Shown here piece after piece: positions 15,647-49,958 of a stretch of DNA of 64,000 nucleotides (the first letter of the stretch is position 1; every line of letters starts with the position of its first letter). The stretch covers positions 9,920,001 to 9,984,000 of the forward strand of contig NC_047083.1 of assembly GCF_902459465.1 (NCBI RefSeq), read 5' to 3'. Made by a program: the position numbers and the translations under genes. The notes beneath the pieces were generated by a model. The model saw only the letters and a list, made by a program, of their open reading frames with translations. It searched no databases and had not been told where the DNA came from. The stretch comes from Asterias rubens. Its lineage: Eukaryota.

Positions 15647-18258
15647 TTACACCTTGTTATAAATCTTCACTGATTTGTTGTCAGCCACTGCAAGCTGCTG
15701 ACCATCTGATGTCAATGACATTCCACATGGGTTGTACAGACCCTGAGCAATACAGCTGATAAATCTCCCCTGAGTGTCATACTGATGAATATGACCAGTG
15801 TTGCAATCCTCATTGCACACTGCAATGTAGATAGTTGAGCTGTCACAGCATACACCTCTGCAGTATTCAACTTGTTGACTATCAATCTTTGGATTGATGC
15901 TGAATAATAAAGTACCAGTGAGTTCAACAATGTCTACTTGTTCCCCATCACCACTGACTACAACTCTGTCCTTGCTGTCAATGGCCAAGTAGCAAGGTCT
16001 AGTCTGAACTGAAACAGTGTCAATGAGTGAACCATCACTGGATCTGTGTTTAGTTATGACTGACCTCACTATATCCCCCACAATGATTGATGTATCCTTC
16101 ATGATTGCTACACTGCAGAGGTTCACTGATGTCTTGCCCACTTCACTATGAGGCACTGTGTGGAATTCAAACATCTGGTTGCCATTCCTATTGTACATCT
16201 TGACAGAGTTGGTCCCAATCTACAATCACTAACTGATTCTGGAATGCAGCAACAGCCCAAGGCTCTGGAAAACAAAAGAACAAATGGATAGGACCCAATA
16301 TAATGAATGATGATTCATTTGTAAACCACAATGTACTTTACATTATTTTGATTTTTGTACATACAAAGATTTTTTTGTTAAATGTTTCCTGTGTTGTAAA
16401 AGCTCTTTGAAAGTTGCTTCCAATTCAACTGTATACAATCTGACAGTATAACAATGACAACAATTTCTACTGATTGAAATTGTACTGAATTCACTCTTTT
16501 TAACTTTTTACCTTTTTTCCAAGATTTTACCTAAATTGCATTTCTTATTGATATTTATTTTAATCATTTTGTATAAACTTCCTTTGTTGGTGTTGGATAG
16601 AGGAATGTCAATTATTGAGAATGACAGCAGTAGAGTGGATTTAGTGATCATGCAGCGGATGAATGTAGTCCTAGTCTACAAGGTACAGTGAAATAGCAAG
16701 AACCATTCAATTTCATGACATACAGTTTGACTACCATCCATGGAAACCTTGTATTGATCACAACCAATGCTGTGATGTTTAAACATTTTAATGGTTGACT
16801 TGAGTGGAGAACTGCAAACAATGTTTGGTTAATATTCTCAGATTTGTTTGTGGTATTGGATTGGAATAAATCCTTAATTTAATGGAATACTCTTTGACTG
16901 TCAACCTAAAAACTAATCATTCAAGAGTACGTTTTGCGAAGTTTTATCTGAGATTTACAACAATATACCTCTGGTGAAAAGATTTGTAAGGAACTTACGG
17001 CTTGATGTGAAAGATTTCTTCTGGAGTCCCTTAGTGTTGTAGATTACCACTCTGTTATTCCCGTAGTCTGCCACTACCATCTCATCCCCAGGTACAGAGG
17101 CATCAATGTCCAAAGCCCCATCGATTCCTTCATCATACTCCAAACCAAGCTCCCACTTCGTACTCAGGTTACCCAGGGAGATGTCACAAACCCCTGCAGT
17201 GAATCTCAGATGGTCAAGGGTCAAATCTATCTTAGGTTGATTTTGATCTCCAAGTAATTTCAAGTCCTTACTGATTGTTGGATAGCTTGCAAGGAAGTCA
17301 GGCACTGATGAATTCTTGCTGATGTCTTTGGCAGTCTGCAGTGAATGATTTATTTGCTGTGAGTTTAGACGCACTGTTTGCTCAAATCCTCCAATTTCTT
17401 GTTCCGATCTTTAAGGATAGTTTTTATTTCATCCATGATGCGACTCTCTTGAGCTGTTACCTCAGCCCTGATCTCATCCGCTCTGTTCTTCACCTCTGCC
17501 ATGGTTCTCTTAGCTGCGATGTTTAGGTTGTCTTTCATTGTTGAGGCAGTTGCTTGAGATTGATCAAGCTTCTTCAGGGTTTCTTCAAGGGGAGTAAAGA
17601 GTTGAGCCAATGACTGTTTGTATGTGGATGAGGCTTGGTTGCAGTCAATATACTCATGTTGTGGTTTACAGTGATCGATGACAGTACAAGCTTGGCAAAT
17701 CATCATATTACATGTTTTGCAATAAAACCACATCACTTCACCTTCATGAGTTTGGCATTCTGGATGGCGTTTTGGTTTTGTCTTTTTCATTGCAATCTTT
17801 CCATCACTAATATCTTTCAAAGTCGCTACTATATGGCTTGCTGATGCTGGAATTTGATTGTGTATTTCATTGCAGTTTGCACAGATGATCATGAGGCAGT
17901 CACAACAGAAATACGTTGCTTCATTTTTCTCCTTGCATAATTTACAGACCAACTTGCTGTTTGCAGATAAGCTGACCTGCTCCAGTTGACCTGCAAGACC
18001 AGTTAAAATGAAGTTACTCTTGAAATCTTCAACACCCGTCTCAGGAAGTTGTGTCTCCTTTCGACACAAAGGACAAATAAGCATCTTTGCATCTTTGTAG
18101 TTGGTAGTCTGATATTCAAGTAAACAGTGTTTACAGAAGCTGTGAAGACAGTCTAGTAGTTTGGGTTCCCTGTACTCCTCGTGACAAATACTGCACTCCA
18201 GATAATCCTTTCGGATTTTCTCCAGAGCTGAACCTTGTGATGGTTTAGAAAATGCCAT
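15647..18258 (-). pseudogene. TRIM-NHL copy A, disrupted by two frameshifts (would give a 297-aa RBCC-only product)
   Basis: ATG at 18258 follows acceptor ttcag|ATCACAATG. Exon 1 runs to 16999 (C|gtaagt) and exon 2 is 16264-15647. There is a 1-nt loss at about 17385 (GATTTGAG vs GATTTTGAG in copy C), giving a stop at 17365, and a second frameshift near 16215 (GTAGATTGGGACC vs GTAGGATATGGGACC in B). Confidence 0.85.
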
Positions 18259-18379
18259 TGTGATCTGAATAAAAAAAAACACAATTACATGTAACAAACT
18301 AATTAATCAAATATTATAAACCGCAAGGGAATCTGACTAGGTAAATTTTAAATGATATGGGGTTAAACTAAGAAAATAC

Positions 18380-18546
18380 GACTAGAGTCAGACTCGAACC
18401 AGCGATCTCCGGAGTAACGTGTCGGCGCTCTACCTACTGAGCTATCTAGCCAACATAGAGTGACAAACAACACATGGCTTATAGCTCAGTTGGTAGAGCG
18501 CCAGCACATATTATCTGGAGGCAGTTGGTTCAAGTCCTACTCTAGT
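18380..18546. mobile_element. Back-to-back pair of tRNA-derived (SINE-type) heads upstream of the TRIM A coding exon
   Basis: Minus-strand head 18380-18451 and plus-strand head 18476-18546, each with an A box (TAGCTCAGTNGGTAGAGC) and a B box (GGTTCRAGTC); 24-nt spacer. Confidence 0.8.
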
Positions 18547-19178
18547 AAATATTTCTTTGTTCATTCTCAAATAAAAAGACTTAACATTCAGTTTGCACAA
18601 ACAGCTGATTGCTATTCTTCATCAAATTAAACCATGCATCATACATTAGATGGGAATGTAATGAAGCATTAACATTCTAAGTAAGACTGAAGATTTCTTT
18701 GATGTAGCATTTTGCAATCAGCTTTTAAGCAACCATAAGCAAACATTTAGTCAGCTAACAACAATAATTTAATACTAATTGGATTTGGAACTCTTTGGTT
18801 CAGCACTGAATATTGGGGATGCCAAATATAATAATATGAACTATGGAAATCAAGTCTTTCTGATTAAATGGTTGAGAACACTAAGGTGCAAGTATTTTAC
18901 AATATTTTGTTACAAATAAGCGGATCTGCTGCACTTTTCTTGAAAATAGCTATTTTTGTCTAGCAGTTTAAGCATAAAAATAATTTATGTCTCACTGAGA
19001 TTATTTTAGTGACTTTGTTTTACTATAAGTATAATTTCTTAAAAACTACACATCCTCAGCAAGCATAAAATTATGTACTGCACAAATTAAGTGGTATTGG
19101 TATACAATCTTAGGCCCGTTTTAAATAAGCTGGCAAAGTATTTTAGCAAAAATGAATCAGATTGTGATCTGTACTCAC

Positions 19179-19310
19179 CTAAGCACTTAGTACTGTTCAA
19201 AAAGATGTCCAAGATACGTGTCAGAATTTTCACTGAGTTAACAGCAGTCTCTTATTTCCTGGTAGAACTCAAAACTCTGTCGCAACAAATACAGTCACAA
19301 AAACACCTAC
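19179..19310 (-). other. Putative non-coding 5'UTR exon of TRIM A (upstream boundary approximate)
   Basis: Consensus donor AG|gtgagt at 19179/19178, conserved upstream of all four TRIM copies. The coding exon has an acceptor 6 nt before its ATG, so an upstream exon is required. Confidence 0.55.
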
Positions 19311-20349
19311 ATAGCAAGTTTGTACTATGTACTGTGAAGGGTGTGTCCAAAGTTGCTGGATCAATGTAAAACATACAACGTACGTACTGCAATACTGTAT
19401 GTTGACAATGAACTTCAGTGTCAAAGGTCATGGAGCTAGGGATACTGCACGTCTATTTGTTGTGGGGGGGGGGGCTGTTTAACAATGAACTTGGCAGTGT
19501 ACATGGTGTAAACAACTCCATGAGTGTACAACAACACATAGTGAACGTACAATGTACTGTATAGTAGTAGCCTACAGTGTGTTGACAATAAACTTCAGTG
19601 TCAAAGGTCATGGAGCTAGGGATACTGCACGTCTGTTTGTTGTCGGGGGGGGGGGGGGGGGGGGGGGGCTGTTTTAACAATGAACTTGGCAGTGTACATG
19701 GTGTAAACAACTCCATGAGTGTACAACACATAGAGTGATGAAGTTGTAAAGAGCGATATAGAAATAAGGTTATTATTACTAATCATAGAGCTGCTAAGCA
19801 CAAAAAATTGCTTAGCATGACATTTCTCGGTAAAAACAGGATTACCAACCAAATTTTCATTTGTTGCATATTGCTTGATACTGGTATTCAGCTGTTGTTT
19901 GCTATATCCTGAAAATCACGTGGAAATTTGGTTGGTAATCCTGTTTTTATCAAGGAAAAAAATTTCATGCTAAGCAAATTTTGTGCTTACAGGCTTTATG
20001 AAATTGAGCCCTGTATGCTACGGGAAATGAAACAGTACACAGGTGCACTTTTGTATTTTATTTCAAGTCAGATTATAAAAAAACATGACTTGTCTCAAAT
20101 CATTTTGTGATGAAATCACAGCAACTAAAATAAAAATGTACACCAGAGTTCTTCTTTGCCCAATTGGTGCTAAGCACAAGTTCATTTTATGCTTAGAGTC
20201 CCATAGCAAATTGTGCTGAGCAGAATTTCACATTAATTATAGAATCTAGAAGTATGTAACTAACTTATTGACTCAGAATAATCATTAAAAGAATACTGTC
20301 ATGATCAAACATTCTAAATGTATGGAATTATGAACTTTAAAAAATGATT

Positions 20350-20500
20350 TGGGGTTGAAAAAAGGAAAATTGTCTAGAGTGGGACTCAAACCAACGACCT
20401 CCAGATTTATGCCGGCGCTCTACCGACTGAGTGAGCTAGTCCTATACGTTGGCGGTCTTCCTATTTTATCAGTTTCTTTGTTCAGGGGTACCAGTCATTC
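20350..20500 (-). mobile_element. tRNA-like SINE head fragment (also at about 27870-28010; more degraded at about 13350, 44625 and 63320)
   Basis: gtgggactcaaaccaacgacctccag...ggcgctctaccgactgag reads as reverse B and A boxes. Confidence 0.6.
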
Positions 20501-22227
20501 CAGCTTTTATAAATGGCCACAAGATTTATACACAATGCACACAGACCAAGTTTGTACAATTGGAAAATACCTCTTGGATCAGAGCAGTTTTTACAAGACA
20601 AGGAAATTGAATAAGGAAGAGAGATGTGGAATAAATCTTCACATGACAGAAATAACAATAGAGTAGGAATCATCTCCAGATTTATTGACAATGTCTAAAG
20701 TTGGGAGTACAATAAGAGACAGATATAGCATTCATCCAAACAAGTCTACATAAGCAATAATCAACTGCAATGTCCATCTTGATTTATTGACAATGTCTAA
20801 AGTTGGGAGTACAATAAAAGACAGATATAGCATTCATCTAAACAAGTCTGCATGAGCAATAATCAACTGCAACGTCCATCTTGGTTAATATACAGATCAA
20901 ACTTACTCCAAAACTACAATTCAACTACTTTACATAGTTAGTCTGTGCAAACAATGATTTGAAATCATGGACAAAATAATTTCTGTTGCAAGAGTCTCCA
21001 AAATCACTCCCAAACAACAACAAATGTACACAAAGGAAAGTTTGGAAATATAAAAAAACAGAGAAGTACCATCAAATAAATTTCCATAAAACTACAATTC
21101 ACCTACTTTACAGTCTAGTCAGTCTGTGCAAACAATGATTTGAAATCATGAACAAAGTGATTTCTGTTGTAGTGGTCTACTGAAACCGCCCCAAACAACA
21201 ACAAAAAGTACAAAAAGGAGAAATGGTCAATTAGGATGAAATCAAATAGCCACTTTCGACTGTGTTTTAAATAACTTTTATGAGTGCACACAGATATCGG
21301 GCCATCTGGGTCACAAGAAAATAGTGAAAAACATGAATGATGCAAAATATAAATGAGCAAAACGCTCACTGAGCAATAAGCTCCAAACAGGAAATTAGTT
21401 TTATTTATTTCTCATCAAATGCGACATTTCAGACATAAATATTTCAAGGGATGTTTTCTGCCATCACCATCATTAGATCGTGTAATTTTATGTAAATCTG
21501 TAATCTGAGCAATTCTGTAATGTTCCTAAACGCCCTGGACACGATTGGTAATTACTCAAAATAATTGTTAGCATAAAAACTTACTTTTTAATGAGCAATA
21601 GTATGAGACATGGTGAGAAACGGCTCCCTCTGAAGTAGGTAGTTTATGAGAAAGAAGTAATTTCTCACTAAAACATTTGAATTGAAATCAAGACCTCGGC
21701 TAAGGTCTTGAAATCAAGCATCTGAAAGCACACAACTTGTGAAGCAAGTGTTTTTTTTTCTTCCATTACTCTCTCGCAACTTCGACGACCAATTGGGTTG
21801 CAATTTTACAGGTTTGCTATTTTATGTTTAGATACACAAGTGAGAAGACTGGTCTTTGACAAAAACCAAGTGTGTCCAGTACCTTTAAATGTGATGATAA
21901 CAATAAAATAAACAATTCACATTATTTTAGCTCTTATGGCATTTTCATAATTGCTTACAACTTTCCAATTACAAACGGAATCTTACTTACAAAGCAAGTT
22001 ATGGCAAAATATACAATAGTTAGCTTTATTACATTTTGATGAGTAATGATTTTCAAAGCAACTCGTTGCATGCAATGTTAAACTTCATAGAATGCTTCTC
22101 TTATCAAAAGGAAAAGGTTGCACTACTTAATGAACAACCCCATAATGTAATAATCAACCCTTTGCATGCTTCTATTTCTTGCAAATACTAGTTCCTGCCC
22201 GATGGAATGTTTTTACAAAACCACTTA

Positions 22228-22608
22228 AAGCCAGTGGACACTATTGGTAATTGTCAAAGACTAGCCTTCACAGTTGGTGTATCTCAACATATGCATAAAA
22301 TAACAAACATGTGAAAATTTGAGCTCAATCGGACATCAAACTTGTGAGATAATAATGAAAGAAAAAACACCCTTGTCACATGGACGTTCTGTGCCTTTAG
22401 ATGGTTTTATTTGAGACCTCAAGTTCTAAACTTAAGGTCTTGAAATCAAATTCATGGAAAATTAGATCTTTCTCGAAAACTATGGCATATCAGAGGGAGC
22501 TGTTTCTCACAATGTTTCATACCATCAACCTCTCCCCATTACTCGTCGTCAAGAAAGGTTTTATGCTAATAATTATTTTGAGTAATTAACGATAGTGTTC
22601 ACTGCTTT
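22228..22608. mobile_element. Same TTAA family in the TRIM 3' flank (copies at about 15037-15362 with deletion and 46668-47047; opposite-orientation copies at about 14337-14692, 21530-21885 and 45970-46325; intronic copies at about 12051-12338, 43325-43612 and 62065-62350)
   Basis: ttaa|agccagtggacactattggtaatt ... gatagtgttcactgctt|ttaa termini and a shared internal sequence; no transposase ORF. Confidence 0.8.
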
Positions 22609-22890
22609 TAAAATAGACAAGCCTGTCCTCAAGATATTTTTTCTCAAAACAACATTTTACTGCAAAATGCAAAACAAATAAAAAATTACAGAGTTGATTT
22701 GGAACCAAGTATTACAGAGTCGATCCACTCAATGTCATAATATTGAGAATTGAAATTGAGTGGTTATTAGCACTTTTTTTAGTGAAAAATCAGTTTGCAT
22801 AATTTTGTGATTTAATTTGATTGACATATTGTGATGGTCAGTTTAATCCATGAGACAGTATTTGACCAGTATCATCTTTATTAGATGACA

Positions 22891-25523
22891 TTACACCTTG
22901 TTATAAATCTTCACTGATTCCTTGTCTGCCACTGCAAGCTGCTGACCATCTGATGTCAATGAGATTCCACATGGGTGGTACGGACCCTGAGCAATACAGC
23001 TGATAAATCTACCCTGAGTGTCATACTGATGAATATGACCAGTGTTGCAACGCCTATTGCGCACTGCAATGTAGATAGCTGAGCTGTCACAGCATACACC
23101 TTTGCAGTATTCAACATGTTGACTATCAATCTTTGGATTGATGCTGAATAATAAAGTACCAGTGACTTCTACAATGTCTACTTGTTTCCCCCCACCACTG
23201 ACTACAACTCTGTCCTTGCTGTCAATGGCCAAGTAGCAAGGTCTAGTCTGAACTGAAACAGTGTCAAGGAGTGAACCATCACTGGATCTGTGTTTAGTTA
23301 TAACAGACCTCTCTATATCCCCCACAATGATTGATGTATCCTTCATGATTGCTACACTGTGGAGGTCTACTGATGACTTGCCCACTTCACTATGAGGCAC
23401 TGTGTGGAATTCAAACATCTGGTTGCCATTCCTATTGTACATCTTGACAGAGTTGGTCCCATATCCTACAATCACTAACTGATTCTTGAGTGCAGCAACA
23501 GCCTGAGGGCCTGGAAAACAAAGAACAAATGGATAGGACCCAATATAATGAATGATGATTCATTTGTAAACCACAATGTACTTTACATTATTTTGATTTT
23601 TGTACAAATACAAAGTTTTTTTTTGTTAAATGTTTCCTGTGTTGTAAAAACTCTTTGAAAGTTGCTTCCAATTCAACTGTATACAATCTGACAGTATAAC
23701 AATAACAACAATTTCTACTGATTGAAATTGTACTGAATTCATTGTTTTTAACTTTTTACCTTTTTTCCCCAGATTTTACCTAAATTGTATTTCTTATTGA
23801 TATTTATTTTAATCATTTTGTATAAACTTCCTTTGTTGGTGTTGGATAGAGGAATGTCAATTATTGAGAATGACAGCAGTAGAGTGGATTTAGTGATCAT
23901 GCAGTGGATGAATGTAGTCCTAGTCTACAAGGTACAGTAAAATAGCAAGAACCATTCAATTTCATGACATACAGTTTGACTACCATCCATGGAAACCTTG
24001 TATTGATCACAACCAATGCTGTGATGTTTAAACATTTTAATGGTTGATTTGAGTTGAGAACTGCAAACAATGTTTGGTAAATATTCTCAAATTTGTTTGT
24101 GGTATTGGATTGGAATAAATCCTTATTTTAATGGAATATTAAACTTTGACTGTCAACCTGAAAACTAATCATTCAAGAGTACTTTTTGCAAAGTTTTATC
24201 TGAGATTTACAACAATATACCTCCGACTAAAAGATTTGTAAGGAACTTACTGCTTGATAGTGGGAAAGTTTTCTTCTGTTGTCCCTTACTGTCGTAGATT
24301 ACCACTCTGTTTTTCCAGTTGTCTGCCACTGCCATCTCATCCCCAGGTACAGAGGCATCAATGTCATAAGCCCCATTGATTCCTTCACCATACTCCAAAC
24401 TAAGCTCCCACTTTGGCTCCTTCATACTCAGGTTACCCAGGGAGATGTCACAAACTCCTGGGGTGAATCCCAGATCGTCCAGGGTCAAATCTATCTTAGG
24501 TTGATTTTGATCTCCAAGTAATTTCAAGTCCTTACTGATTCTTGGATAGCTTGCAAGGAAGTCAGGCACTGATGAATTCTTGCTGATGTCTTTGGCAGTT
24601 TGCAGTGAATGATTTATTTGCTGTGAGTTTAGACGCACTGTTTGCTCAAATTCCTCCAATTTCTTGTTCCGATCTTTAAGGATAGTTTTTATTTCATCCA
24701 TGATGCGACTCTCTTGAGCTGTTACCTCAGCCCTGATCTCATCCGCTCTGTTCTTCACCTCTGCCATGGTTCTCTTAGCTGCAATGTTGAGGTTGTCTTT
24801 CATTGTTGAGGCAGTTGCTTGAGATTGATCAAGCTTCTTCATGGTTTCTTCAAGGGGAGTAAAGAGTTGAGCCAAAGACTGTTTGTATGTGGATGAGGCT
24901 TGGTTGCAGTCAATATACTCATGTTGTGGTTTACAGTGATCTATGACAGTACAAGCTTGGCAAATCATCATACTACATGTTTTGCAATAAAACCACATCA
25001 CTTCACCTTCATGAGTTTGGCATTCTGGATGGCGTTTTGGTTTTGTCTTTTTCATTGCAATCTTTCCATCACTAATATCTTTCAAAGTCGCTACTATATG
25101 GCTTGCCGATGCTGGAATTTGATTGTGTATTTCATTGCAGTTTGCACAGATGATCATGAGGCAGTCACAACAGAAATACGTTGCTTCATTTTTCTCCTTG
25201 CATAATTTACAGACCAACTTGCTGTTTGCAGATAAGCTGACCTGCTCCAGTTGACCTGCAAGACCAGTTAAAATGAAGTTACTCTTGAAATCTTCAACAC
25301 CCGTCTCAGGAAGTTGTGTCTCCTTTCGACACAAAGGACAAATAAGCATCTTTGCATCTTTGTAGTTGGTAGTGTGATATTCAAGTAAACAGTGTTTACA
25401 GAAGCTGTGAAGACAGTCTAGTAGTTTGGGTTCCGTGTACTCCTCGTGACAAATACTGCACTCCAGATAATCCTTTCTGATTTTCTCTAGAGCTGAACCT
25501 TGTGATGGTTTAGAATATGCCAT
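22891..25523 (-). CDS. TRIM-NHL E3 ubiquitin ligase copy B (RING-Bbox1-Bbox2-coiled coil-NHL), intact, about 630 aa
   Basis: Exon 25523-24251 (1273 nt, phase 1, A|gtaagt) joins exon 23510-22891 (620 nt). C3HC4 RING CSIC...CLHSFCKHC...CPLC, two B-boxes, a helical region, and NHL repeats (e.g. PCYLAIDSKDRVVVS, HPCGISLTSDGQQLAVAD). Confidence 0.93.
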
Positions 25524-25638
25524 TTTGATCTGAATAAAAAAAAACACAATTAACAAACTAATTAATCAAATATTAAAAACTGCAAGGGAATCCGACTAAG
25601 TAAATTTTAAAAGATATGGGGTTGAACTAAGAAAATTG

Positions 25639-25805
25639 GACTAAAGTGGGACTTGAACCAGCGACCGCCGGAGTAGCGTGCCGATGCTCTACCAACTGAG
25701 CTATCTAGCCAACATAGAGTGACAAACAACACATGGCTTATAGCTCAGTTGGTAGAGCGCCAGCACATATTATCTGGAGGCAGTTGGTTCAAGTCCCACT
25801 CTAGT
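25639..25805. mobile_element. Back-to-back tRNA-like pair (TRIM B)
   Basis: Heads at 25639-25710 (-) and 25735-25805 (+). Confidence 0.8.
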
Positions 25806-26182
25806 AAATTTGTCTTGGTTCAACCTCAAATAAAAAAATAGCTGATGCTATTCTACATCAAATTGAACCATGTATCGTACATTAAAGGGAAGGTATACTA
25901 ATGGTAATTGTCAAAGACCAGTGTTGTACGAATTTGTGTGCTTTCAGATAGGAATAAAAGATATTCTAGCTAGAAGCCTTTAATTATTTAAGTGAGAAAT
26001 TACCTCTATTTCAAAAACTACGTTACTTCAGAGGGAGTCATTTCCCAAAATGTTTTATACTATCAACAGCTCAACAAGAAAGGTTTTGTGCTAATAATTA
26101 CTTTGAGTAATTTACCAATAGTGTCCACTGCCTTTAAGAGGCGACCCTTTAAAGTAAAGTTCTAAGAATTCCACCTCCGTAC

Positions 26183-31064: not shown

Positions 31065-33671
31065 TTACACCTTGTTATAAATCTTCACTGATTTGCAATC
31101 TGCCACTGCAAGCTGCTGACCATCTGATGTCAATGAGATTCCATATGGGTTAAACAGACCCTGAGCAATACAGCTGAGAAATCTCCCCTGAGTGTCATAC
31201 TGATGAATATGACCAGTGGTAAACCCATTGCACACTGCAATGTAGATAGCTGAGCTGTCACAGCATACACCTCTGCAGGATTGATAATGTTGACTATTGA
31301 TCTTTGGATTGATGCTGAATAATAAAGTACCAGTGAGTTCAACAATGTCTTCTTGTTTCCCCTCACCACTGACTACAACTCTGTCCTTGTTGTCAATGGC
31401 CAAGTAGCAAGGTATAGTCTTAACTGAAACAGTGTCAATGAGTGAACCATCACTGGATCTGTGTTTAGTTATAACTGACCTCCCCATATCCCCCACAATG
31501 ATTGATGTATCCTTCATGATTGCTACACTGCAGAGGTCTACTGATGTCTTGCCCACTTCACTATGAGGCACTGTGTGGAATTCAAACATCTTGGTGCCAT
31601 TCCTATTGTACATCTTGCCAGAGTCCGTCCTATCTACAATCACTAACTGATTCTGGAATGCAGCAACAGCCCGAGGGACTGGAAAACAAAAGAACAAATG
31701 GATAGGACCCAATATAATGAATGATGATTCATTTGTAAACCACAATGTACTTTACATTATTTTGATTTTTGTACAAATACAAAGATTTTTTTTGGTTAAA
31801 TGTTTCCTGTGTTGTAAAAGCTCTTTGAAAGTTGCTTCCAATTCAACTGTATACAGTCTGACAGTATAACAATGACAACAATTTCTACTGATTGAAATTG
31901 TACTGAATTCACTCTTTTTAACTTTTTACCTTTTTTCCAAGATTTTACCTAAATTGCATTTCTTATTGATATTTATTTTAATCATTTTGTATAAACTTCC
32001 TTTGTTGGTGTTGGATAGAGGAATGTCAATTATTGAGAATGACAGCAGCAGAGTGGATTTAGTGATCATGCAGCGGATGAATGTAGTCCTAGTCTACAAG
32101 GTACAGTAAAATAGCAAGAACCATTCAATTTCATGACATACAGTTTGACTACCTTCCATGGAAACCTTGTATTGATCACAACCAATGCTGTGATGTTAAA
32201 ACATTTTAATGGTTGACTTGAGTTGAGATCTGCAAACAATGTTTGGTAAATATTCTCAGATTTGTTTGTGGTATTGGATTGGAATAAATCCTTATTTTAA
32301 TGGAATACTCTTTGACTGTCAACCTGAAAACTAATTATTCAAGAGTACGTTTTGCGAAGTTTTATCTGAGATTTACAACAATATACCTCTGGTTAAAAGA
32401 TTTGTAAGGAACTTACAGTGTGATATTGGGATAGATTTCTAATCGAGTCTACTTGTGTCGTAGATGCAGTCTGCCACTGCCATCTCATCCCCAGGTACAG
32501 AGGCATCAATGTCATAAGCCCACTTGATTCCTTCATCATACTCCAAACCAAGCTCCCACTTTCGCTCCTTCGTACTCAGGTTACCCAGGGAGATGTCACA
32601 AACTCCTGGGGTGAATCCCAGATCGTCCAGGGTCAAATCTATCTTGGGTTGATTTTGATCTCCAAGTAATTTCAAGTCCTTACTGATTGTTGGATAGCTT
32701 GCAAGGAAGTCAGGCACTGATGAATTCTTGCTGATGTCTTTGGCAGTCTGCAGTGAATGATTTATTTGCTGTGAGTTTAGACGCACTGTTTGCTCAAAAT
32801 CCTCCAATTTCTTGTTCCGATCTTTAAGGATAGTTTTTATTTCATCCATGATGCGACTCTCTTGAGCCGTTACCTCAGCCCTGATCTCATCCGCTCTGTT
32901 CTTCACCTCTGCCATGGTTCTCTTAGCTGCGATGTTGAGGTTGTCTTTCATTGTTGAGGCAGTTGCTTGAGATTGATCAAGCTTCTTCATGGTTTCTTCA
33001 AGGGGAGTAAAGAGTTGAGCCAATGACTGTTTGTATGTGGATGAGGCTTGGTTGCAGTCAATATACTCATGTTGTGGTTTACAGTGATCTATGACAGTGC
33101 AATCTCTACAAATCATCACACCACATGTTGTACAGTAGAACCTCATCACTTCACCTTCATGAGTTTGGCATTCTGGATGACGCTTTGGTTTTGTCTTTTT
33201 CATTGCAATCTTTCCATCACTAATATCTTTCAAAGTCGCTACTGTATGGCTTGCTGATGCTGGAATTTGATTGTGTATTTCATTGCAGTTTGCACAGATG
33301 ATCATGAGGCAGTCACAACAGAAATACGTTGCTTCATTTTTCTCCTTGCATAATTTACAGACCAACTTGCTGTTTGCAGATAAGCTGACCTGCTCCAGTT
33401 GACCTGCAAGACCAGTTAAAATGAAGTTACTCTTGAAATCTTCAACACCCGTCTCAGGAAGTTGTGTCTCCTTTCGACACAAAGGACAAATAAGCATCTT
33501 TGCATCTTTGTAGTTGGTAGTGTGATATTCAAGTAAGCAGTGTTTACAGAAGCTGTGAAGACAGTCTAGTAGTTTGGGTTCTGTGTACTCCTCTTGACAA
33601 ATACTGCACTCCAGATAATCCTTTCGGATTTTCTCCAGAGCTGAACCTTGTGATGGTTTAGAAAATGCCAT
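31065..33671 (-). pseudogene. TRIM-NHL copy C with in-frame premature TAG (410-aa truncated product, or pseudogene)
   Basis: Exon 33671-32417 and exon 31678-31065. TAG at 32439-32441 replaces the AAG of copy B, and an 18-nt in-frame deletion lies just upstream. The frame downstream and all of exon 2 remain open. Confidence 0.8.
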
Positions 33672-39029: not shown

Positions 39030-42000
39030 TCACGACGCCATCATGACTGGTCTGGCTTTCTTGGCTTCAAGCGAAGACTCTGCAGCACTCGCAAATCCAG
39101 TTCCTCCCTGAGCAGTAGAAATAAAAAATTAACATTATTAAATACAGACTTTTAGACACTTGTCATTGTAAGGATGTAGGCATGGGTATACACTAGGAGC
39201 CTGGCTGGTAAAGCAGAATGCACTTGGAGATGGCTACTGCCACCAGGGGCAAGTTGCCACCTACTCCTGGGGCTGAAACAGGGTTACCCCCTTCACAGTC
39301 CGTAAGGATAGGCATGGGTACCATCCACTAGGAGCCTGGCTGGTAGAGCAGAATACACTAGGAGAGGGCTACTGACACCAGGGGCAAGTTGCCACCTACT
39401 CATGGGGCTGAAACAGGGTTACCCCCTTCACAGTCTGTAAGGATAGGCATGGGTACCATCCACTAGGAGCCTGGCTGGTAGAGCAGAATACACTAGGAGA
39501 GGGCTACTGACACCAGGGGCAAGTTGCCACCTACTCATGGGGCTGAAACAGGGTTACCCCCTTCACAGTCTGTAAGGATAGGCATGGGTACCATCCACTA
39601 GGAGCCTGACTGGTAGAGCAGAATGCACTAGGAGAGGGCTACTGCCACCAGGGGCAAGTTGCCACCTACTCCTGGGGCTGTAACAGGGTCCCCTTCACAG
39701 TCTGTAAGGATGAAGGCTTGGGTATCATCCACTAAGAGCCTGACTGGTAGAGCAGAATGCACTACCTCCCTAACTTTTTACAAAGCATTTATGCATAAGT
39801 GCCTTACTCATCAAGGGCACAAGTGCCATGGTCAGGATCCAACAAGCACTCTGCTTGGGGTTCCGTGGGCTAAGACATGCCACACAAAAAAATAATAATA
39901 ATAATAATAATAATATATATATATTTTTAAGTAAGCCATAATTTTTGTTCTTCTTTTCTATGCAAGTCGCCAGACACACAAGGCCTGAAGGCCTCTTCAA
40001 GGTGTGGGCTACAATTGTTTTTCCCAGAGGCTGTTGCCACCTACTCCTAGGGCTGAAACAGGGTTACCCCTTTCATAGTCCACACGGATGTAGGCTTGGG
40101 TATCATCAGTCCGAAGCCTGGCCGGTAGAGCAGAAAGCACTACCTCCCTGTGTGACCCAGAATCGCCCCCAAGTTACAATTCAACCTGGGAAGCGGTAGC
40201 CAGGGGCTCACCTGAAGATAGTCTCCGCTATTCGTATAAAACTAACCCTTCTGATTTTGATAATGTCATTCTCCTTCAGTGCGTCTCCTGTGAAGGGGTC
40301 CGTCATGTCCTTCTTTATGATTTTCTTGATACAGTCCATCGTGACGACCTTCCCACTTAAAAAAAAACAATAGAAAAGTACATACTTAAAGTAGGATTAT
40401 AAATTTTGCGTGGTAGAAGTACAACTGAGAGAGGTTTGCAGTAGCACCATGTGAAAATCTCTTTTGAGTAGTGTTGATTCTGAGAATAACTGGTTGTTAA
40501 GGACTCCCACCTTTGTGTACCAACGAGCCCATCCCATCCACCAGTTAATACTTTACAAGGCAGTAAATATTGAAGTGTGAAAGTACGCTGGAAGTGTCGT
40601 GGCCGAGCAATTAAAAGAGTACGGAATTCAAACTCTGGTGTTTCTGATCAGCAGAGTGTGGGTTGGAATCCCCAGCCGTGACACTTAAGCAAGACATTTA
40701 ACCATTGCTTCGTCCTTCGGATGGGACGTAAAGCCGTTGGTCCCATGTGTTGTGTAACGCATGTAAAAGAACCCAGTGCACTTATCAAAAAGAAAAGGGG
40801 TTCGCCCCGATATTCCTGGCTGAGGCTGCGGCTGAGGCTTGTAAACCCTTATATATTAACAGTTTAGATGTAAGTTTTGCATCAGGTCAAGTAATATAAT
40901 TTTGGTTACCCTTAAACCGACGTGTTTTATATTAAGCACTATATCCTGTGTTCTGTGAAAATATTCAACAGGCTTAAATGTTATATTTGTATACAGTCAC
41001 ATAAATTTACCTTGGTCGCAGCACAGCACAAGGCGTCTTGTTTGATAAGATGTCATGCGTGACAGCACATTTGTACCGGATCTGCTTGGCCACCAGAGGG
41101 CGCTTGTCGTTGACGTCATCAGCTCGTACGAAGTTCACCTGGATAAGATTCTTTATCCTCAGAGGCTTCTTGCTCATGGGGCAGTAAACTGCTTTGCTCT
41201 GTAGATTTAAAAGTGCGATAATAATAAGTTTATACAAAGTGCTATTTTTAGGTAGATCAAGGTGCTGTGACAAAAAGAAAATAACGCAATAAAAGCGTAA
41301 TTTTTGTTAACAATAGACCCCTTGCAATACGCGCAGCGTACTCACATGTGCCTATCCCGAGTGTCATTTTGGGTGTCAAAATCTTATACAAACATGCACA
41401 ACAGAGAGATGACACCCAAAATTACGCGCATTGTTCAGGGGCGCGTTCTATATTTTGTGACTTGTTTTACTCATTTCTCAAAAACTACAGCACCACAGTA
41501 ATTAATATTTGAAGGGAAGCTTACTACTATCTTTATCTTCAGTGTGAGTTTAATGAAAATCTGTGGACATTTTAAAACGGTACCTGAATCCTTTCAGACT
41601 TAAATAGAAAGTGCTTACAGGTTTTTGAACTAAAGTCGCCTTGGCTTGAGGTGTTAATGATGGAATCCAGAAACTTGGAAGTTCTGATTTCTTGTCGCCG
41701 TTTTCAGAGACAGCTGCTGCTGCTGCTGCTGCTGCAGTGCCGCTGCTGCTGCTGGTGCTTGGGGTCTCGGAATGATCAAGTTTGGCCCTTTTGGTGGGTG
41801 GGGCCTCAGAGAAGGGGTTGAGGGGCTTACTGGTGATACTACGCTCTGGAAAAAGAAAGAAAACAAATTCAGGGATGAACGGCGAAAGAAAAAAAAACTG
41901 CATTAAAAATAAATATTTCATAATGGACGGAAAAGGCAGGTAATGTTTTTTGTCCATTTTAAATATGGAGATTTGAGAATGATTAATTAAAAAGAAAATG

Positions 42001-44049
42001 GCTACAGCAGGATTTGACGTCAAGCAGTTGGTCCCATGTGTTGTGTAACGCATGTAAACAAACCCAGTGCACTTATCGAAAAGAGAAGGGGTTGCCCCGG
42101 TGTTCCTGGCTGTGGCTGCTGTATGCGCCGTAGCACCTTGTAAACCCTTATAAGGTGCTAAATTTTGGGTCTCAAAATTCATCTTTCTGCAAGTTTGTAT
42201 ACACTTAGTGCATCGAGTACCTTGTTTGGTAGATACGTAACCTAAAGACTTCGATATTATTATTATTAAATTCAAAGAAAATCACTTCTTTCTCAAAAAA
42301 CTACGTTATGCTAATAATTACTTTGAGTATTTACCAATAGTGTCCACTGCCTTTAAGAGGCGACCCTTTAAAGTAAAGTTCTAAGAATTCCATCTCCGTA
42401 CCTTTCTCAATGAAAGCCTTGACCTTGTCTTCCTTCACTGTCTTCTTCACTTGGCTCACCTCTTCCTAAAAAAAAAAAAAAAAAAATTTATCAAATGAAT
42501 AATATAAATTATAAACAGCCTTTATAAAAGTTTCTGACAAAAATGCCATTCAAGGGTGCAAGTTCGCAAATTTAGACAAAGTCCAGAAAACTCAAAACAA
42601 ACCATCGTTAAATTTATAAGGCACCAGTACAGTAGGCTTAAAACAAAGGTGAGATTGAAGCAAAGTTTTGAAATTGGTTAATAAAGTAGATTGCCTGATT
42701 TTTATTTTATTTTTATGCACGTTGCCTGACACACAAGGCCTGAAGGACACTTCAAGGTGTGGGCTACAATTATTTTGTTTTCCAGAGGCAGTTGCCACCT
42801 ACTCCTAGGGCTGAAACAGGGTTACCCCTTTTACAGTCCATACGGATGTAGGCTTGGGTATCATCGGTCCGAAGCCTATAGACGTTAGAGCAGAAAGCAC
42901 TACCTCCCCAATTTCACGTAGCAAGTGTCATGACCGGGACTCGAACCCACACTCTGCTGGTCAAACACCAATGAAGAAGATGATTCCATAGAAACGTAGA
43001 AATCACATCCCTAACGCCTAATACTGATTATAATAATAATATTTACATACTCACGTATCCGCCCTGCTGGGTGTTCAAGGCACAGTAAACCCCCCCCCCC
43101 CGCCCCCGAAAAAAATAAAATAAAAATACCAACCAGTTGGAGGCGACACTGGCGATGGTATTCCTTCATCTGTTTCTCATAGTCTTGTTTCTGCTTCAAG
43201 ACATACTCAATAATTGCCTCCTTGTCATACAGATACCCCTCCTCACTGGAAAAGATAAGATTTGGGGTTGAGAGTGTTATGGCCGAGTGTTTAAGAACAT
43301 CGAATTCAAGTTCTGGTTGACATAGACACTGGACACTAATGGTAATTGTCAAAGACCAGTCTTCTTACTTGGTGTATCTCAACATGCATAAAATAAAAAA
43401 ATCTGTGAAATTTTGTGCTTTCAGATGCTTGATTTCGTGACCTCAAATTCTAAATCCGAGGTCTTGAAATCAAATTCGTGGAAAATTACTTCTTTCTCAA
43501 AAACTATGTCACTTCAGAGGGAGCTGTTTTCTCACAATGTTTTCTACTATCAACCTCTCCTATTACTCGTTACTAAGTAAGGTGTTATGCTAATAATAGT
43601 GTCCACTGCCTTTAAGTCATCGGGGTGTCGGTTCGAATCCCAGTCATGACACTTGTGTCCTCAGGCAAGATACTTTCCCAATAATTGCTCCTCTTCATCC
43701 AGGGGTATAAACGAGTCAACCCTTGGGACAGTAAGCCCTGAATGTACATCCCGCAGCGTAAATACAGGCGCATCTCCTGATTGCCATTTTGTGGGTCAAA
43801 AATGTACAAAGGAAGGGATTCCCAAAAAGGCAGAAATGGTCGACGCACATTGTTCGCAGACACCATCTTTTTCTGCGCGTTTTTGACACTCAAAATGGCG
43901 GACAGGAGGTGTGCGTTGTGAATAGGGTATATACAGTACATACGTTATGACTGGGTTGGCGCAGGGCTGTAGGGTCAAGCAACAACAATCAAAGTCACCC
44001 ACGGAGTCCTTCCCAAGCCGGGTCTTGTTAGTTCCATAGCCGGATTGAG
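39030..44049 (-). CDS. NOSIP: NOSIP copy 2; coding exons 2-8, no first exon found
   Basis: Exons 44049-43944, 43245-43134, 42465-42402, 41845-41619, 41198-41011, 40355-40247 and 39107-39030 have the same lengths as copy 1 and an open frame. The exon 3 donor is CTG|gttggt (copy 1: CAG|gtttgt). Confidence 0.93.
39166..39770. repeat. 135-137-bp minisatellite, about 4.5 units (NOSIP copy 2 last intron)
   Basis: Anchors at 39192, 39327, 39462, 39597 and 39731. Confidence 0.9.
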
Positions 44050-44981
44050 CTGCAAGGTTAACGAACAAAGAATTTCATAAGGGCGTCACAATTTATTTAG
44101 TCTCTTGTAATCTGGTTAATACATTATAGAACCTTTATAAAAAACTTATTGATTGAGGAGCATCATTTACAGGCATTGAGAAGTATCGCTTAAAGGGAGA
44201 CGATTCTTTAAAAAATTGATCAATAAAAAATAAAAAATAAAAAAATACCACATTTCAAAATATTTAAATTCTTGTTTTATATGGAACCTTGAAGTATTTA
44301 TAAATGCACTTTTGTATTTTATTTAGCATGTTTAGTCAGATTATAAAACCATGACTTGTCTCAAATCAGTTTGTGATGAAATCACAGCAACTAAAATAAA
44401 AATGTACACCAAAGTTCTTCTTTGCCCAATTGGTGCTAAGCACAAGTTCAATTCATGCTAGAGTCCCATAGCAAATTGTGCTAAGCAAAATCTCACATTA
44501 ATTCTAGAACCTAGAAGTGTAACCAACTTATTGATTCAGAATTATCATTTAAAGACTAATGTCATGATCAAACAATGTAGCAAGCATATCAATGTATGGA
44601 ATTGTGAACTCTTAAAAGTGATTTGGTGTTAGAAAAAAAAACTGTCTAGGGTGAGACTCAAACCAAAGACCTCCAGATTAATTGTATTGTATTGTAATGT
44701 TTTATTCCAAACTGGAAGACACCCCGTAGCACTGGGGAGGGTAACAATTTATATAAAAACAAAATACAGTTAATGAATAAGTCATACGGAAAGGAATTTA
44801 ACTTAGAACAAAAACAAATAATCACACAGCATATAGCATTCATCTAAACAAGTCTGCATGAGCAATAATCAACTGCAATGTCCATCTTGATTTATTGACA
44901 ATGTCTAAAGTTGGGAGTATAATAAGAGACAGATATAGCATTCATCTAAACAAGTCTACATGAGCAAAAATCAACTGCAAT

Positions 44982-45274
44982 GCCCCTTATTTTTGACCGC
45001 GCGAGGGCACTACAAATAGTATTTTGATCACTTCCGGGGGTACACGGGATTCGCCCTGCACAAATTAATAGGCGTTATGTCACTTTTGTTGCGCCGTAGT
45101 GTCAATTTGCTTTAGAGGTGGATTATAACGGCTCCTTTAAAAGTCTTATTGTCTGTGATGGATTGGCTGTCTGTGGTTATAATGTGTTCCAATCTTTAAA
45201 AACTGTTTTGTGTATGAATGAATATACCCCCGAAAGTGATTGAGAGCGCCCTCACGCGGTCAAAAATATGGCCC
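44982..45274. mobile_element. 293-bp MITE with 30-bp TIRs and an apparent 2-bp (AT) TSD, inserted in the 102-bp repeat
   Basis: The TIRs gccccttatttttgaccgcgcgagggcact and gggccatatttttgaccgcgtgagggcgct match at 25/30. Subterminal IR atcactt(c/t)cgggggta. The empty site gcaatatcaatc is seen in sister repeat units. Confidence 0.85.
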
Positions 45275-47330
45275 ATATCAATCTAGATTTATTGACAATG
45301 TCTAAAGTTGGGAGTACAATAAGAGACAGATATAGCATTCATCTAAACAAGTCTGCATGAGCAATAATCAACTGCAATATCAATCTAGATTTATTGACAA
45401 TGTCTAAAGTTGGGAGTACAATAAGAGACAGATATAGCATTCATCTAAACAAGTCTGCATGAGCAATAATCAACTGCAATGTCCATCTTGGTTAATATAA
45501 AGATCAAACTTACTCTATAAACTACAATTCAACTACTTTACAGTCTAGTCAGTATGTGCAAACAATGATTTGAAATCATGAACAAAATGATTTCTGTTGT
45601 AGTGGTTTCTTGAAACCGCCCAAAACAACAACAAAAAGTACAAAAAGGAACGTTCAGGAGAAATGGGCAATTAGCATGAAATCAAATAGCCACTTTCAAC
45701 TGTGTTTTAAATAACTTTTATGAATGCACACAGATATTGGGCCATCTGGGTCACAAGAAAATAGTGAAAAACATGAATGATGCAAAATTTAAATGAGCAA
45801 AACGTTCACCGAGCAATAAACTCCAAACAGGAAATTAGTTTTATTTATTTCTCATCAAATGAGACATTTCAGACATAAATATTTCAAGGGATGTTTTCTG
45901 CCATCACCATCATTAGATGGTGTAAGTTTTATGTAAATCTGTAATCTGAGCAATTCTGTAATGTTCCTAAACACCCTGGACACAATTGGTAATTACTCAA
46001 AATAATTGTTAGCATAAAAACTTACTTTTTAATGAGCAATAGTATGAGACATGGTGAGAAACGGCTCCCTCTGAAGTAGGTAGTTTATGAGAAAGAAGTA
46101 ATTTCTCACTAAAACATTTGAATTGAAATCAAGACCTCGGCTAAGGTCTCGAAATCAAAGATCTGAAAGCACTCAACTTGTGAGGCAAGCTTTTTTCTTT
46201 CTTCCATTACTCTCTCGCAACTTCGACGACCAATTGGGTTGCAATTTTACAGGTTTGCTATTTTATGTTTAGATACACAAGTGAGAAGACTGGTCTTTGA
46301 CAAAAACCAAGTGTCTCCAGTACCTTTAAATGTGATGATAACAATAAAATAAACAATTCACATTATTTTAGCTCTTATGGCATTTTCATAATTGCTTACA
46401 ACTTTCCAATAACAAAGGGAATCTGACTTACAAAGCAATTATGGCCAATATACAATAGTTAGCTTTACTACATTTTAATGAGTAATGATTTTAAAAGCAA
46501 CTCTTTGCATGCAATGTTAAACTTCATTGATTGCTTCTCTTATCAAAAGGAAAAGGTTGCACTACTTAATGAACAACCCCATAATGTAACAATCAACCCT
46601 TTGCATGCTTCTATTTCTTGCAAATACTAGTTCCTGCCCTATGGAATGTTTTTACAAAACCACTTAAAGCCAGTGGACACTATTGGTAATTGTCAAAGAC
46701 TAGCCTTCACAGTTGGTGTATCTCAACATATGCATAAAATAACAAACCTGTGAAAATTTGAGCTCAATCGGACATCAAACTTGTGAGATAATAATGAAAG
46801 AAAAAACACCCTTGTCACACGGAAGTTCTGTGCCTTTAGATGGTTTTATTCGAGACCTCAAGTTCTAAACTTAAGGTCTTGAAATCAAATTCATGGAAAA
46901 TTAGATCTTTCTCGAAAACTATGGCATATCAGAGGGAGTTGTTTCTCACAATGTTTTATACCATCAACCTCTCCCCATTACTCGTCATCAAGAAAGGTTT
47001 TATGCTAATAATTATTTTGAGTAATTAACGATAGTGTCCACTGCTTTTAAAATAGACAAGCCTGTACTCAAGATATTTTTTCTCAAAACGACATTTTACT
47101 GCAAAATGCAAAACAAATAAAAAATTACAGAGTTGATTTGCAGCCAAGTATTACAGATTTGATCCACTCAATGTCATAATATTGAGAATAGAAATTGAGT
47201 GGTTATTAGCACTTTTTTTTACTGAAAAATCAGTTTGCATAATTTTGTGATTTAATTTGATTGACATATTGTGATGGTCAGTTTAATCCATGAGACAGTA
47301 TTTGACCAGTATCATCATAATTAGATAACA

Positions 47331-49958
47331 TTACACCTTGTTATAAATCTTCACTGATTTGTAGTCAGCCACTGCAAGCTGCTGACCATCTGATGTCAAT
47401 GAGATTCCCATTGGGTCATACAGACCCTGAGCAATACAGCTGAGAAATCTCCCCTGAGTGTCATACTGATGAATATGACCAGTGCGTACCCCATTGCTCA
47501 CTGCAATGTAGATAGCTGAGCTGTCGCAGCATACACCTTTGCAGTATTCAACTTGTTGACTATCAATCTTTGGATTGATGCTGAATAATGAAGTACCAGT
47601 GACTTCAACTATGTCTACTTGTTTCCCCTCACCACTGACTACAACTCTGTCCTTGCTGTCAATGGCCAAGTGGTAAGGTGGTGTCTGAACTGAAACAGTG
47701 TCAATGAGTGAACCATCACTGGATCTGTGTTTAGTTATAACTGACCTCTCTGCATCCCCCACAATGATTGATGTATCCTTCATGATTGCTACACTGCGGA
47801 GGTTCACTGATGTCTTGCCCACTTCACTATGAGGCACTATGTGTAATTCAAACATCTTGGTGCCATTCCTATTGTACATCTTGACAGAGTTGGTCATATC
47901 TACAATCACTAACTGATTCTGGAATGCAGCAACAGCCCGAGGGTCTGGAAAACAAAAGAACAAATGGATAGGACCCAATATAATGAATGATGATTCATTT
48001 GTAAACCACAATGTACTTTACATTATTTTGATTTTTGTACAAATACAAAGATTTTTTTTGTTAAATGTTTCCTGTGTTGTAAAAACTCTTTGAAAGTTGC
48101 TTCCAATTTAACTGTATACAATCTGACAGTATAACAATAACAACAATTTCTACTGATTGAAATTGTACTGAATTCATTGTTTTTAACTTTTTACCTTTTT
48201 TCCCCAGATTTTACCTAAATTGCATTTCTTATTGATATTTATTTTAATCATTTTGTATAAACTTCCTTTGTTGGTGTTGGATAGAGGAATGTCAATTATT
48301 GAGAATGACAGCAGTAGAGTGGATTTAGTGATCATGCAGTGGATGAATGTAGTCCTAGTCTACAAGGTACAGTAAAATAGCAAGAACCATTCAATTTCAT
48401 GACATACAGTTTGACTACCATCCATGGAAACCTTGTATTGATCACAACCAATGCTGTGATGTTTAAACATTTTAATGGTTGATTTGAGTTGAGAACTGCA
48501 AACAATGTTTGGTAAATATTCTCAAATTTGTTTGTGGTATTGGATTGGAATAAATCCTTATTTTAATGGAATATTAAACTTTGACTGTCAACCTGAAAAC
48601 TAATCATTCAAGAGTACTTTTTGCAAAGTTTTATCTGAGATTTACAACAATATACCTCCGACTAAAAGATTTGTAAGGAACTTACTGCTTGATAGTGGGA
48701 AAGTTTTCTTCTGTTGTCCCTTACTGTCGTAGATTACCACTCTGTTTTTCCAGTTGTCTGCCACTGCCATCTCATCCCCAGGTACAGAGGCATCAATGTC
48801 ACAAGCCCCATTGATTCCTTCACCATACTCCAAACTAAGCTCCCACTTTGGCTCCTTCATACTCAGGTTACCCAGGGAGATGTCACAAACTCCTGGGGTG
48901 AATCCCAGATCGTCCAGGGTCAAATCTATCTTAGGTTGATTTTGATCTCCAAGTAATTTCAAGTCCTTACTGATTCTTGGATAGCTTGCAAGGAAGTCAG
49001 GCACTGATGAATTCTTGCTGATGTCTTTGGCAGTTTGCAGTGAATGATTTATTTGCTGTGAGTTTAGACGCACTGTTTGCTCAAATTCCTCCAATTTCTT
49101 GTTCCGATCTTTAAGGATAGTTTTTATTTCATCCATGATGCGACTCTCTTGAGCTGTTACCTCAGCCCTGATCTCATCCGCTCTGTTCTTCACCTCTGCC
49201 ATGGTTCTCTTAGCTGCGATGTTGAGGTTGTCTTTCATTGTTGAGGCAGTTGCTTGAGATTGATCAAGCTTCTTCATGGTTTCTTCAAGGGGAGTAAAGA
49301 GTTGAGCCAAAGACTGTTTGTATGTGGATGAGGCTTGGTTGCAGTCAATATACTCATGTTGTGGTTTACAGTGATCTATGACAGTACAAGCTTGGCAAAT
49401 CATCATACTACATGTTTTGCAATAAAACCACATCACTTCACCTTCATGAGTTTGGCATTCTGGATGGCGTTTTGGTTTTGTCTTTTTCATTGCAATCTTT
49501 CCATCACTAATATCTTTCAAAGTCGCTACTATATGGCTTGCCGATGCTGGAATTTGATTGTGTATTTCATTGCAGTTTGCACAGATGATCATGAGGCAGT
49601 CACAACAGAAATACGTTGCTTCATTTTTCTCCTTGCATAATTTACAGACCAACTTGCTGTTTGCAGATAAGCTGACCTGCTCCAGTTGACCTGCAAGACC
49701 AGTTAAAATGAAGTTACTCTTGAAATCTTCAACACCCGTCTCAGGAAGTTGTGTCTCCTTTCGACACAAAGGACAAATAAGCATCTTTGCATCTTTGTAG
49801 TTGGTAGTGTGATATTCAAGTAAGCAGTGTTTACAGAAGCTGTGAAGACAGTCTAGTAGTTTGGGTTCCCTGTACTCCTTGTGACAAATACTGCACTCCA
49901 GATAATCCTTTCGGATTTTCTCCAGAGCTGAACCTTGTGATGGTTTAGAAAATGCCAT
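47331..49958 (-). CDS. TRIM-NHL E3 ubiquitin ligase copy D, intact, about 628 aa
   Basis: Exon 49958-48686 (1273 nt, phase 1) joins exon 47944-47331 (614 nt). Domain order is the same as copy B. Confidence 0.93.

Follow-up and report, generated by a model that had tools for sequence, protein, structure and literature searches.

Introduction

Canonical TRIM-NHL proteins (TRIM2/TRIM3, TRIM71/LIN-41, Brat, Mei-P26 and TRIM32) are single-copy, slowly evolving developmental regulators whose NHL propeller has a basic top face. Published work defines the NHL top surface by the BC and DA loops of the blades; in Brat, this surface is the platform to which RNA binds (PMC4015489), and LIN-41 likewise uses its top face for RNA binding (PMC5908797). 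In the finTRIMs of fish and the TRIM5alpha of primates, the surface loops of the C-terminal recognition domain are under strong positive selection (PMC2657112). The WD40 propellers of the fungal HET-D/HET-E (HNWD) NLR proteins show concerted evolution, with a near-identical scaffold and hypervariable surface codons (PMC12222747). Here we analyze a window of 64,000 nt from the starfish Asterias rubens (LR699113.1 / NC_047083.1), in whose own coordinates all positions below are given unless otherwise stated. The window harbors four tandem paralogous two-exon TRIM-NHL genes, named copies A to D, all on the minus strand. Their N-terminal RING/B-box/coiled-coil (RBCC) half is repeatedly homogenised between neighboring genes, and diversifying selection on the top face of their C-terminal NHL propeller is well supported.

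The starfish family has the RING, B-box, coiled coil and six-bladed NHL propeller in common with the canonical proteins. It differs from TRIM2, TRIM3 and TRIM71 by having no filamin domain, and from canonical TRIM-NHL proteins in general by its dozens of tandem copies, its hypervariable top face and a net loop charge that ranges from -5 to +6. With finTRIMs and TRIM5alpha it shares a constant effector joined to a variable sensor, positive selection being concentrated in loops while the RBCC is conserved. The sensor of those proteins is a B30.2 domain, whereas the putative sensor of the starfish family is an NHL β-propeller, and the host is an echinoderm. The likeness to HET-D/HET-E lies in a β-propeller sensor that combines concerted evolution with hypervariable surface codons. 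In the fungal proteins, homogenisation takes place among repeats inside one gene and the effector is HET/NACHT, whereas in starfish it takes place among tandem genes, the propeller exon is spared, and the effector is a predicted RING ligase. To our knowledge, TRIM ligases with a constant effector and a hypervariable sensor have so far been documented for the B30.2 domain in vertebrates. Neither the diversification of echinoderm TRIM-NHL genes nor positive selection at the NHL top face was described in any paper found in our literature search, which yielded only analogues and is not proof of absence. The starfish genes follow the same evolutionary logic, but the fold is the NHL propeller, which in other settings belongs to RNA regulators of development that evolve slowly.

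Domain architecture and fold

A search with the exon 1 protein returned dozens of matches of 620-640 residues in A. rubens, A. amurensis, Patiria miniata and Acanthaster planci, whose automatic names are inconsistent (TRIM2, 3, 33, 56 and 71-like). The same scaffold is maintained across Asterias, Patiria and Acanthaster. Exon 1 encodes the RING, for which the Pfam models zf-C3HC4, zf-RING_UBOX and zf-RING_2 scored over the cut-off, and the B-box (PF00643), which was matched in two stretches at 35-40 bits against a cut-off of 24.1, together with weak B-box1-like matches. The RING zinc ligands C22, C25, C37, H39, C42, C45, C62 and C65 are invariant in 57 asteroid sequences, as are the B-box ligands. 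The NHL model (PF01436) reached 32 bits with a cut-off of 20. Neither the filamin domain (IG-FLMN, PF00630) nor a B30.2 (SPRY/PRY) domain was matched in the Pfam scan, the C-terminus being the NHL propeller, and an NCBIfam search gave no useful result.

The AlphaFold2 model was obtained for P0003, the 626-residue product of a fifth copy, E, that follows D in the array. It comprises a continuous helix from residue 206 to 337, corresponding to the coiled coil, and an NHL domain with a predicted local distance difference test score above 90, in which 24 strands form six blades. Only about 30 low-confidence residues lie between the end of the helix (337) and the first NHL strand (369). The best Foldseek matches are the NHL domains of TRIM3 and TRIM2 (template modeling score 0.80), followed by Thin, TRIM71 and Brat, with E-values from 1e-18 to 1e-13. 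The TRIM3 NHL domain was also matched by phmmer (5.7e-10), and the RING is closest to those of TRIM3 and TRIM2. Sequence identity to solved NHL domains is just 15-24%. With a RING, two B-boxes, a coiled coil and a six-bladed NHL propeller, the family is a TRIM-NHL family without a filamin domain. Its members are probably cytosolic, starfish-specific RING E3 ubiquitin ligases, their ligase activity being predicted from the intact RING motif.

Variation and diversifying selection on the propeller top face

An earlier note on this DNA had proposed that variation among the paralogues clusters at propeller loops, in an interval (15647-47944) bounded by the stop codon of A and the first base of D exon 2. 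All seven motif sets that it listed are found in the exon 2 translations, in the order A/B/C/D: NLCS/DLHS/DLCS/NLRS, GDIV/GDIE/GDMG/GDAE, TRPCY/TRPCY/TIPCY/TPPYH, GDGE/GGGK/GEGK/GEGK, CNEDCN/RNRRCN/CNGFT/SNGVR, LYNPCG/PYHPCG/LFNPYG/LYDPMG and ADNK/ADKE/ADCK/ADYK. The changes also lie where it had placed them, at the two neighbors of the conserved Pro/Leu that precedes strand A and at the first one or two positions following the Asp/Gly at the end of strand B. Among A to D, 64 of 259 residues vary in the NHL half versus 15 of 330 in the RBCC (Fisher p = 9e-13). Within the NHL half, 31 of 68 residues vary in the BC/DA loops versus 8 of 46 in the AB/CD loops (p = 0.0015). Positions with at least three states number 12 in the top loops, 5 in the strands and none in the bottom loops.

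The 24 strands defined by DSSP were assigned to six blades, the N-terminal strand being 6D, which closes the ring. The BC and DA loops belong to one face, as follows from the antiparallel meander topology, and the earlier equation of these loops with the top, RNA-binding face of Brat and LIN-41 agrees with the literature (PMC4015489, PMC5908797). Hypervariable columns were defined by an entropy of at least 2 bits among 37 Asterias-clade proteins, which yielded 24 columns. Eighteen of them are located in BC or DA loops and the other six on the strand residue directly adjoining such a loop, whereas none falls in the 46 residues of the AB/CD loops (Fisher p = 3e-5 for loops only; 2e-7 for top versus rest). 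The bias towards one face on which the earlier proposal depended is thus present in every hypervariable column. When 26 hypervariable sites were defined without the window copies, 20 of them were found to vary among A to D as well (p = 6e-9). The strings of hypervariable residues are all different (37 of 37 sequences). They show enrichment of Trp (7.4% versus 1.2%) and also of Arg, Lys, Tyr and Cys, and are rich in Asn and Gly. Among the 37 proteins, NHL identity stays on a plateau of 75-88%, as expected from few saturated sites on a conserved scaffold, and RBCC identity runs from 99% down to 70%.

The patches can be located in the two intact window copies, B and D, on the minus strand, from entropy, loop assignment and sites with a posterior above 0.9. 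In exon 2 of copy B, the patches span 22918..23466, with the BC-loop patches at 23458-23466, 23311-23316, 23185-23193, 23044-23061 and 22918-22923, and the DA-loop patches at 23359-23367, 23233-23244, 23101-23118 and 22969-22980. The blade-1 patches of B lie in exon 1, at 24366-24377 and 24309-24320. In copy D, the exon 2 patches (span 47358..47900) are at 47895-47900, 47796-47804, 47748-47753, 47670-47681, 47622-47630, 47538-47555, 47484-47498, 47409-47420 and 47358-47363, and the blade-1 patches in exon 1 at 48801-48812 and 48744-48755.

Pairwise Nei-Gojobori ω (dN/dS) among A to D is 0.16-0.24 for the RBCC, as compared with 0.9-1.6 for exon 2. When the hypervariable codons were taken from sequences outside this set, their dN was 0.34-0.57 versus a dS of 0.04-0.07 in the remaining NHL codons, which corresponds to ω of 5-11 (Fisher p from 1e-4 to 1e-8). 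Codons were also grouped by structure alone, to avoid picking sites by their variability, in a set of 13 copies comprising A. rubens A to E and the eight copies of A. amurensis, 11 of the 13 being intact. In this set, the nonsynonymous diversity (piN) of the top loops is 0.20 (bootstrap 0.15-0.26) versus an NHL-wide synonymous diversity (piS) of 0.067. For the RBCC, ω is 0.33 and piN is 0.033.

Site-class models were fitted with our own Goldman-Yang implementation, which reproduced the IQ-TREE M0 likelihood exactly (-3351.10). For the NHL half, M0 gave an ω of 1.73, and the comparison of M1a with M2a gave a likelihood ratio test (LRT) statistic of 294.7, with 12.4% of codons at ω = 11.1. Sites with a posterior above 0.9 number 29, of which the top loops hold 19, the strands 7 and the bottom loops 3. 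The RBCC control on its own tree was not significant (LRT 5.8, p = 0.056), and each third of the NHL half, analyzed on a separate tree and restricted to the 11 intact copies, gave an LRT of about 71. The dN/dS above 1 that the earlier note had anticipated at the variable sites is therefore observed, and the RBCC effector half is under purifying selection, with ω of about 0.3.

A candidate recognition surface

Taken as a whole, these data are probably best explained by a tandem family of TRIM-NHL ligases in which a constant effector half is joined to a diversified top face that acts as recognition surface. The top face, with about 25 BC/DA-loop residues, would form the ligand-binding surface, and each paralogue would recognise a different target. 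The target would then be marked, or a signal sent, through the shared RING/coiled-coil module. Such targets would be fast-evolving, and the likeliest are viral proteins or RNAs, or those of other parasites or of selfish elements. In this reading the family would work like TRIM5alpha or the fish finTRIMs, with the NHL propeller in place of B30.2. The pattern appears to be that of a diversified recognition system, possibly an immune one as the earlier note had suggested, and we infer that an immune role is plausible. Echinoderms have no antibodies and depend on expanded innate receptor families, and starfish have been struck by mass-mortality disease. If the targets are pathogens, the genes would represent a candidate intracellular restriction or recognition repertoire in starfish, and also a natural library of propeller surfaces with differing specificities on one scaffold.

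Several points weigh against this explanation. Half of the window copies, namely A and C, are broken. A single tree underlies the site models despite pervasive recombination, a concern that the RBCC control and the use of a separate tree for each segment lessen; branch lengths were free only in a common scale factor, and the implementation is our own rather than PAML. The term top face is derived from the DSSP strand topology of the model, and the public transcript contigs described below do not separate alleles from paralogues. Finally, the charge of the top loops is unlike the uniformly basic face of known RNA-binding TRIM-NHL proteins. Counted from sequence in the 37 paralogues, the BC/DA loops carry a net charge between -5 and +6 (mean +1.6), a spread that seems to fit many different ligands better than one conserved RNA-binding mode but decides nothing.

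The charge also bears on the possibility that the loops have diversified for endogenous targets, the copies being sub- or neo-functionalised post-transcriptional regulators of different host mRNAs, or taking part in conflicts over self/non-self recognition (allorecognition), gametes or transposons. Canonical TRIM-NHL proteins employ the top face in regulating RNA, and the closest β-propeller analogue, the fungal HET-D/E WD40 domain, serves allorecognition. We nevertheless consider endogenous targets unlikely, as the top-loop charge is not consistently basic, and as an ω of about 11, the uniqueness of all copies and the lack of 1:1 exon 2 orthologues between congeners point to a continuing arms race and not to subfunctions that have settled.

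Concerted evolution of the effector half

The divergence between copies B and D amounts to 0.63% for exon 1 and 0.41% for the intron, but to 7.65-7.9% for exon 2 and about 3% for the 3' flank. A sliding-window comparison delimits a homogenised tract at 23588..25387 of B, on the minus strand (D counterpart about 48023-49822), with 5 differences in about 1800 nt. The tract spans most of exon 1 and nearly the entire intron, and stops about 80 nt short of exon 2. Exon 2 of B and D harbors nine purely synonymous differences (dS about 0.07-0.08). Thus, exon 2 represents a genuinely older lineage, and the near-identity upstream of it marks a tract of conversion or crossover. Mis-assembly of haplotypes as the origin of B and D was considered and rejected, as an array of eight copies with the same unit is present in the independent assembly of A. 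amurensis.

The A. amurensis copies (Aa1 to Aa8) behave similarly. Aa2 and Aa8 differ by 0.1% in the intron versus 8.8% in exon 2, Aa1 and Aa2 by 0.0% in the flank versus 7.2% in exon 2, and Aa4 and Aa7 by 0.3% in the flank versus 7.1% in exon 2, while Aa4 and Aa6 differ by 1.7% in exon 1. The near-identical pairs found in exon 1, in the intron and in the 3' flank give mutually incompatible groupings. Exon 2 is star-like among the 13 copies, with differences of 4.9-9.7% and a minimum never below 4.9%, and no orthologous pairs of exon 2 are recognisable between A. rubens and A. amurensis. In the identity profiles, tracts extend right to the exon 2 border from either side, and the blade-1 portion of exon 1 resists homogenisation too. 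The pairwise homoplasy index (PHI) test was significant for exon 1, the intron and the whole gene. Within exon 2 it was not significant (p = 0.15), but incompatibility is saturated there at about 45% of site pairs, already between neighboring sites, so that PHI cannot separate very short conversion tracts from recurrent substitution.

The effector half is thus repeatedly homogenised between neighbors by gene conversion or unequal crossing-over, whereas the NHL-coding DNA is never homogenised, which leaves a unique top face in every copy. In the closest pairs the intron is as identical as the RBCC, which is a signature of gene conversion, and the sameness of the RBCC is therefore not only a matter of constraint. 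The earlier account of paralogue diversification holds for the top-face bias and for dN/dS above 1, and has to be amended as to the near-invariance of the RBCC. The array clearly exemplifies how gene conversion and diversifying selection can act side by side, each on one half of a gene.

Mosaic history by itself, in which conversion homogenises exon 1 and the intron while the NHL exon simply retains older divergence without positive selection, would account for the age of B/D exon 2 (dS about 0.07-0.08) relative to the adjoining intron at 0.4%, and recombination is indeed pervasive. It is nonetheless highly improbable, since it fails on a dN of 0.34-0.57 at hypervariable codons versus a dS of 0.04-0.07 in the same exon, on the exclusive top-face location, and on the sparing of exon 2 in several independent pairs; moreover, the RBCC recombines equally and has no such signal.

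As a more speculative extension of the recognition-surface explanation, the asteroid NHL propeller could be the variable sensor of a large intracellular immune-receptor repertoire, and the array may be organised for diversity generation. Conversion would then homogenise the effector half yet be excluded from the sensor exon, and the open exon 2 of the broken copies A and C may provide donor cassettes for patchwise exchange of top-face loops. We hold this extension only tentatively and regard it as rather unlikely.

The RBCC itself has a particular substructure. At about codons 121-165 and 176-191 of the coding sequence, the 13 copies carry two sharply different versions of the B-box1/linker and of the B-box2 segment, the latter reading VMWFYCKTC..CQAC or VMRFYCTTC..CRDC (in window copy C, 33100-33150). 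Every combination of the versions is found, and they show as many as 33 differences per 100 nt, which suggests shuffling between two old RBCC lineages. The RBCC, described as almost invariant from A to D, is so within the window (15 of 330 residues varying) but not across the 13 copies, with their piN of 0.033 and these two-state cassettes.

Organization and expression of the array

The four window copies were located through pairs of open reading frames and a four-way alignment, and form units of about 3.4 kb. The alignment reveals a common gene structure, in which a splice acceptor 8 nt upstream of the ATG precedes a coding exon 1 of about 1.27 kb, followed by a phase 1 GT..AG intron of about 740 nt and by exon 2, about 617 nt long. 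Recent segmental duplications make up the entire region, with 93-97% identity in coding and non-coding DNA alike.

Copy B (22891..25523, minus strand) is intact, with 630 codons in exon 1 (24251-25523) and exon 2 (22891-23510), separated by a GT..AG intron (23511-24250). Copy D (47331..49958, minus strand) is also intact, with 628 codons, and comprises exon 1 (48686-49958), the intron (47945-48685) and exon 2 (47331-47944); the acceptor of its coding exon 1 is at 49966, and a 5' untranslated region (5'UTR) exon probably lies further upstream. Copy A (15647..18258, minus strand) comprises exon 1 (16999-18258), the intron (16265-16998) and exon 2 (15647-16264, including the stop codon). In its exon 1 a single nucleotide is deleted between 17387 and 17386, a 2-nt gap lies near the start of exon 2, between 16219 and 16218, and its reading frame from the ATG terminates at 17365. 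In copy C (31065..33671, minus strand), exon 1 (32417-33671) has an 18-nt deletion and an in-frame TAG in blade 1 (32439-32441), and exon 2 (31065-31678) is still open. From these lesions in the assembled sequence, A and C are probable pseudogenes. The earlier treatment of all four copies as functional thus has to be given up, only B and D being intact in the window.

Copy E, intact and in tandem, is located at 10001-12614 of a separately retrieved locus (L001). This locus overlaps the window at 55614-64000 with 100% identity, which places E just past the right window edge, at the window-equivalent positions 65614-68227. This brings the A. rubens array to at least five members, compared with eight in the orthologous array of A. 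amurensis.

Transcript contigs from four public runs were placed on copy D. Depth is in the hundreds in the exons versus 0-100 in the intron. One contig splices 47944 to 48686, skipping 741 nt (CT..AC on the plus strand), which is exactly the predicted intron, and contigs run on into unrelated sequence past 49966, consistent with a 5'UTR exon being spliced there. At least D-like copies are therefore transcribed and spliced as predicted. The contigs break at hypervariable patches, with different continuations in each run, for example at 47632 in the blade-4 BC patch. Four of six exon 2 variants in contigs from other individuals fall within hypervariable patches, including 47486/47488 and 47937/47939. 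These breaks and variants may reflect allelic hypervariability or near-identical paralogues.

Relaxed constraint in a birth-and-death array, with the NHL half drifting neutrally toward pseudogenisation, would agree with the broken copies A and C and with an NHL-wide ω of about 1-1.7, but it is the least probable explanation of all, as neutral drift can neither yield ω far above 1 nor keep strand cores and bottom loops conserved, 11 of 13 copies are intact and the signal persists with these alone, transcripts are spliced, and the scaffold is retained across Asterias, Patiria and Acanthaster.

Sequences associated with the repeat unit

Partial copies of NOSIP, a U-box-like ligase, are co-duplicated with the TRIM unit and are found on the minus strand at 10354-10962, 41550-42275 and 60200-60823. 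An annotated NOSIP gene adjoins copy E, and NOSIP gene models of A. amurensis span TRIM copies. An inverted pair of tRNA-like sequences, resembling a short interspersed nuclear element or a miniature inverted-repeat transposable element, is located at about 50060-50230, upstream of D, and also upstream of A, B and C. The pair sits 100-250 nt 5' of every ATG, in the presumed 5' intron or promoter; in the D counterpart, ARAGORN called no tRNA. Tandem repeats with a period of about 137 nt, in about 14 copies, occupy 56482-58459, with a shorter version in the paralogous unit (39167-39764), and an array with a period of about 85 nt is found near the left window end (4051-4720).

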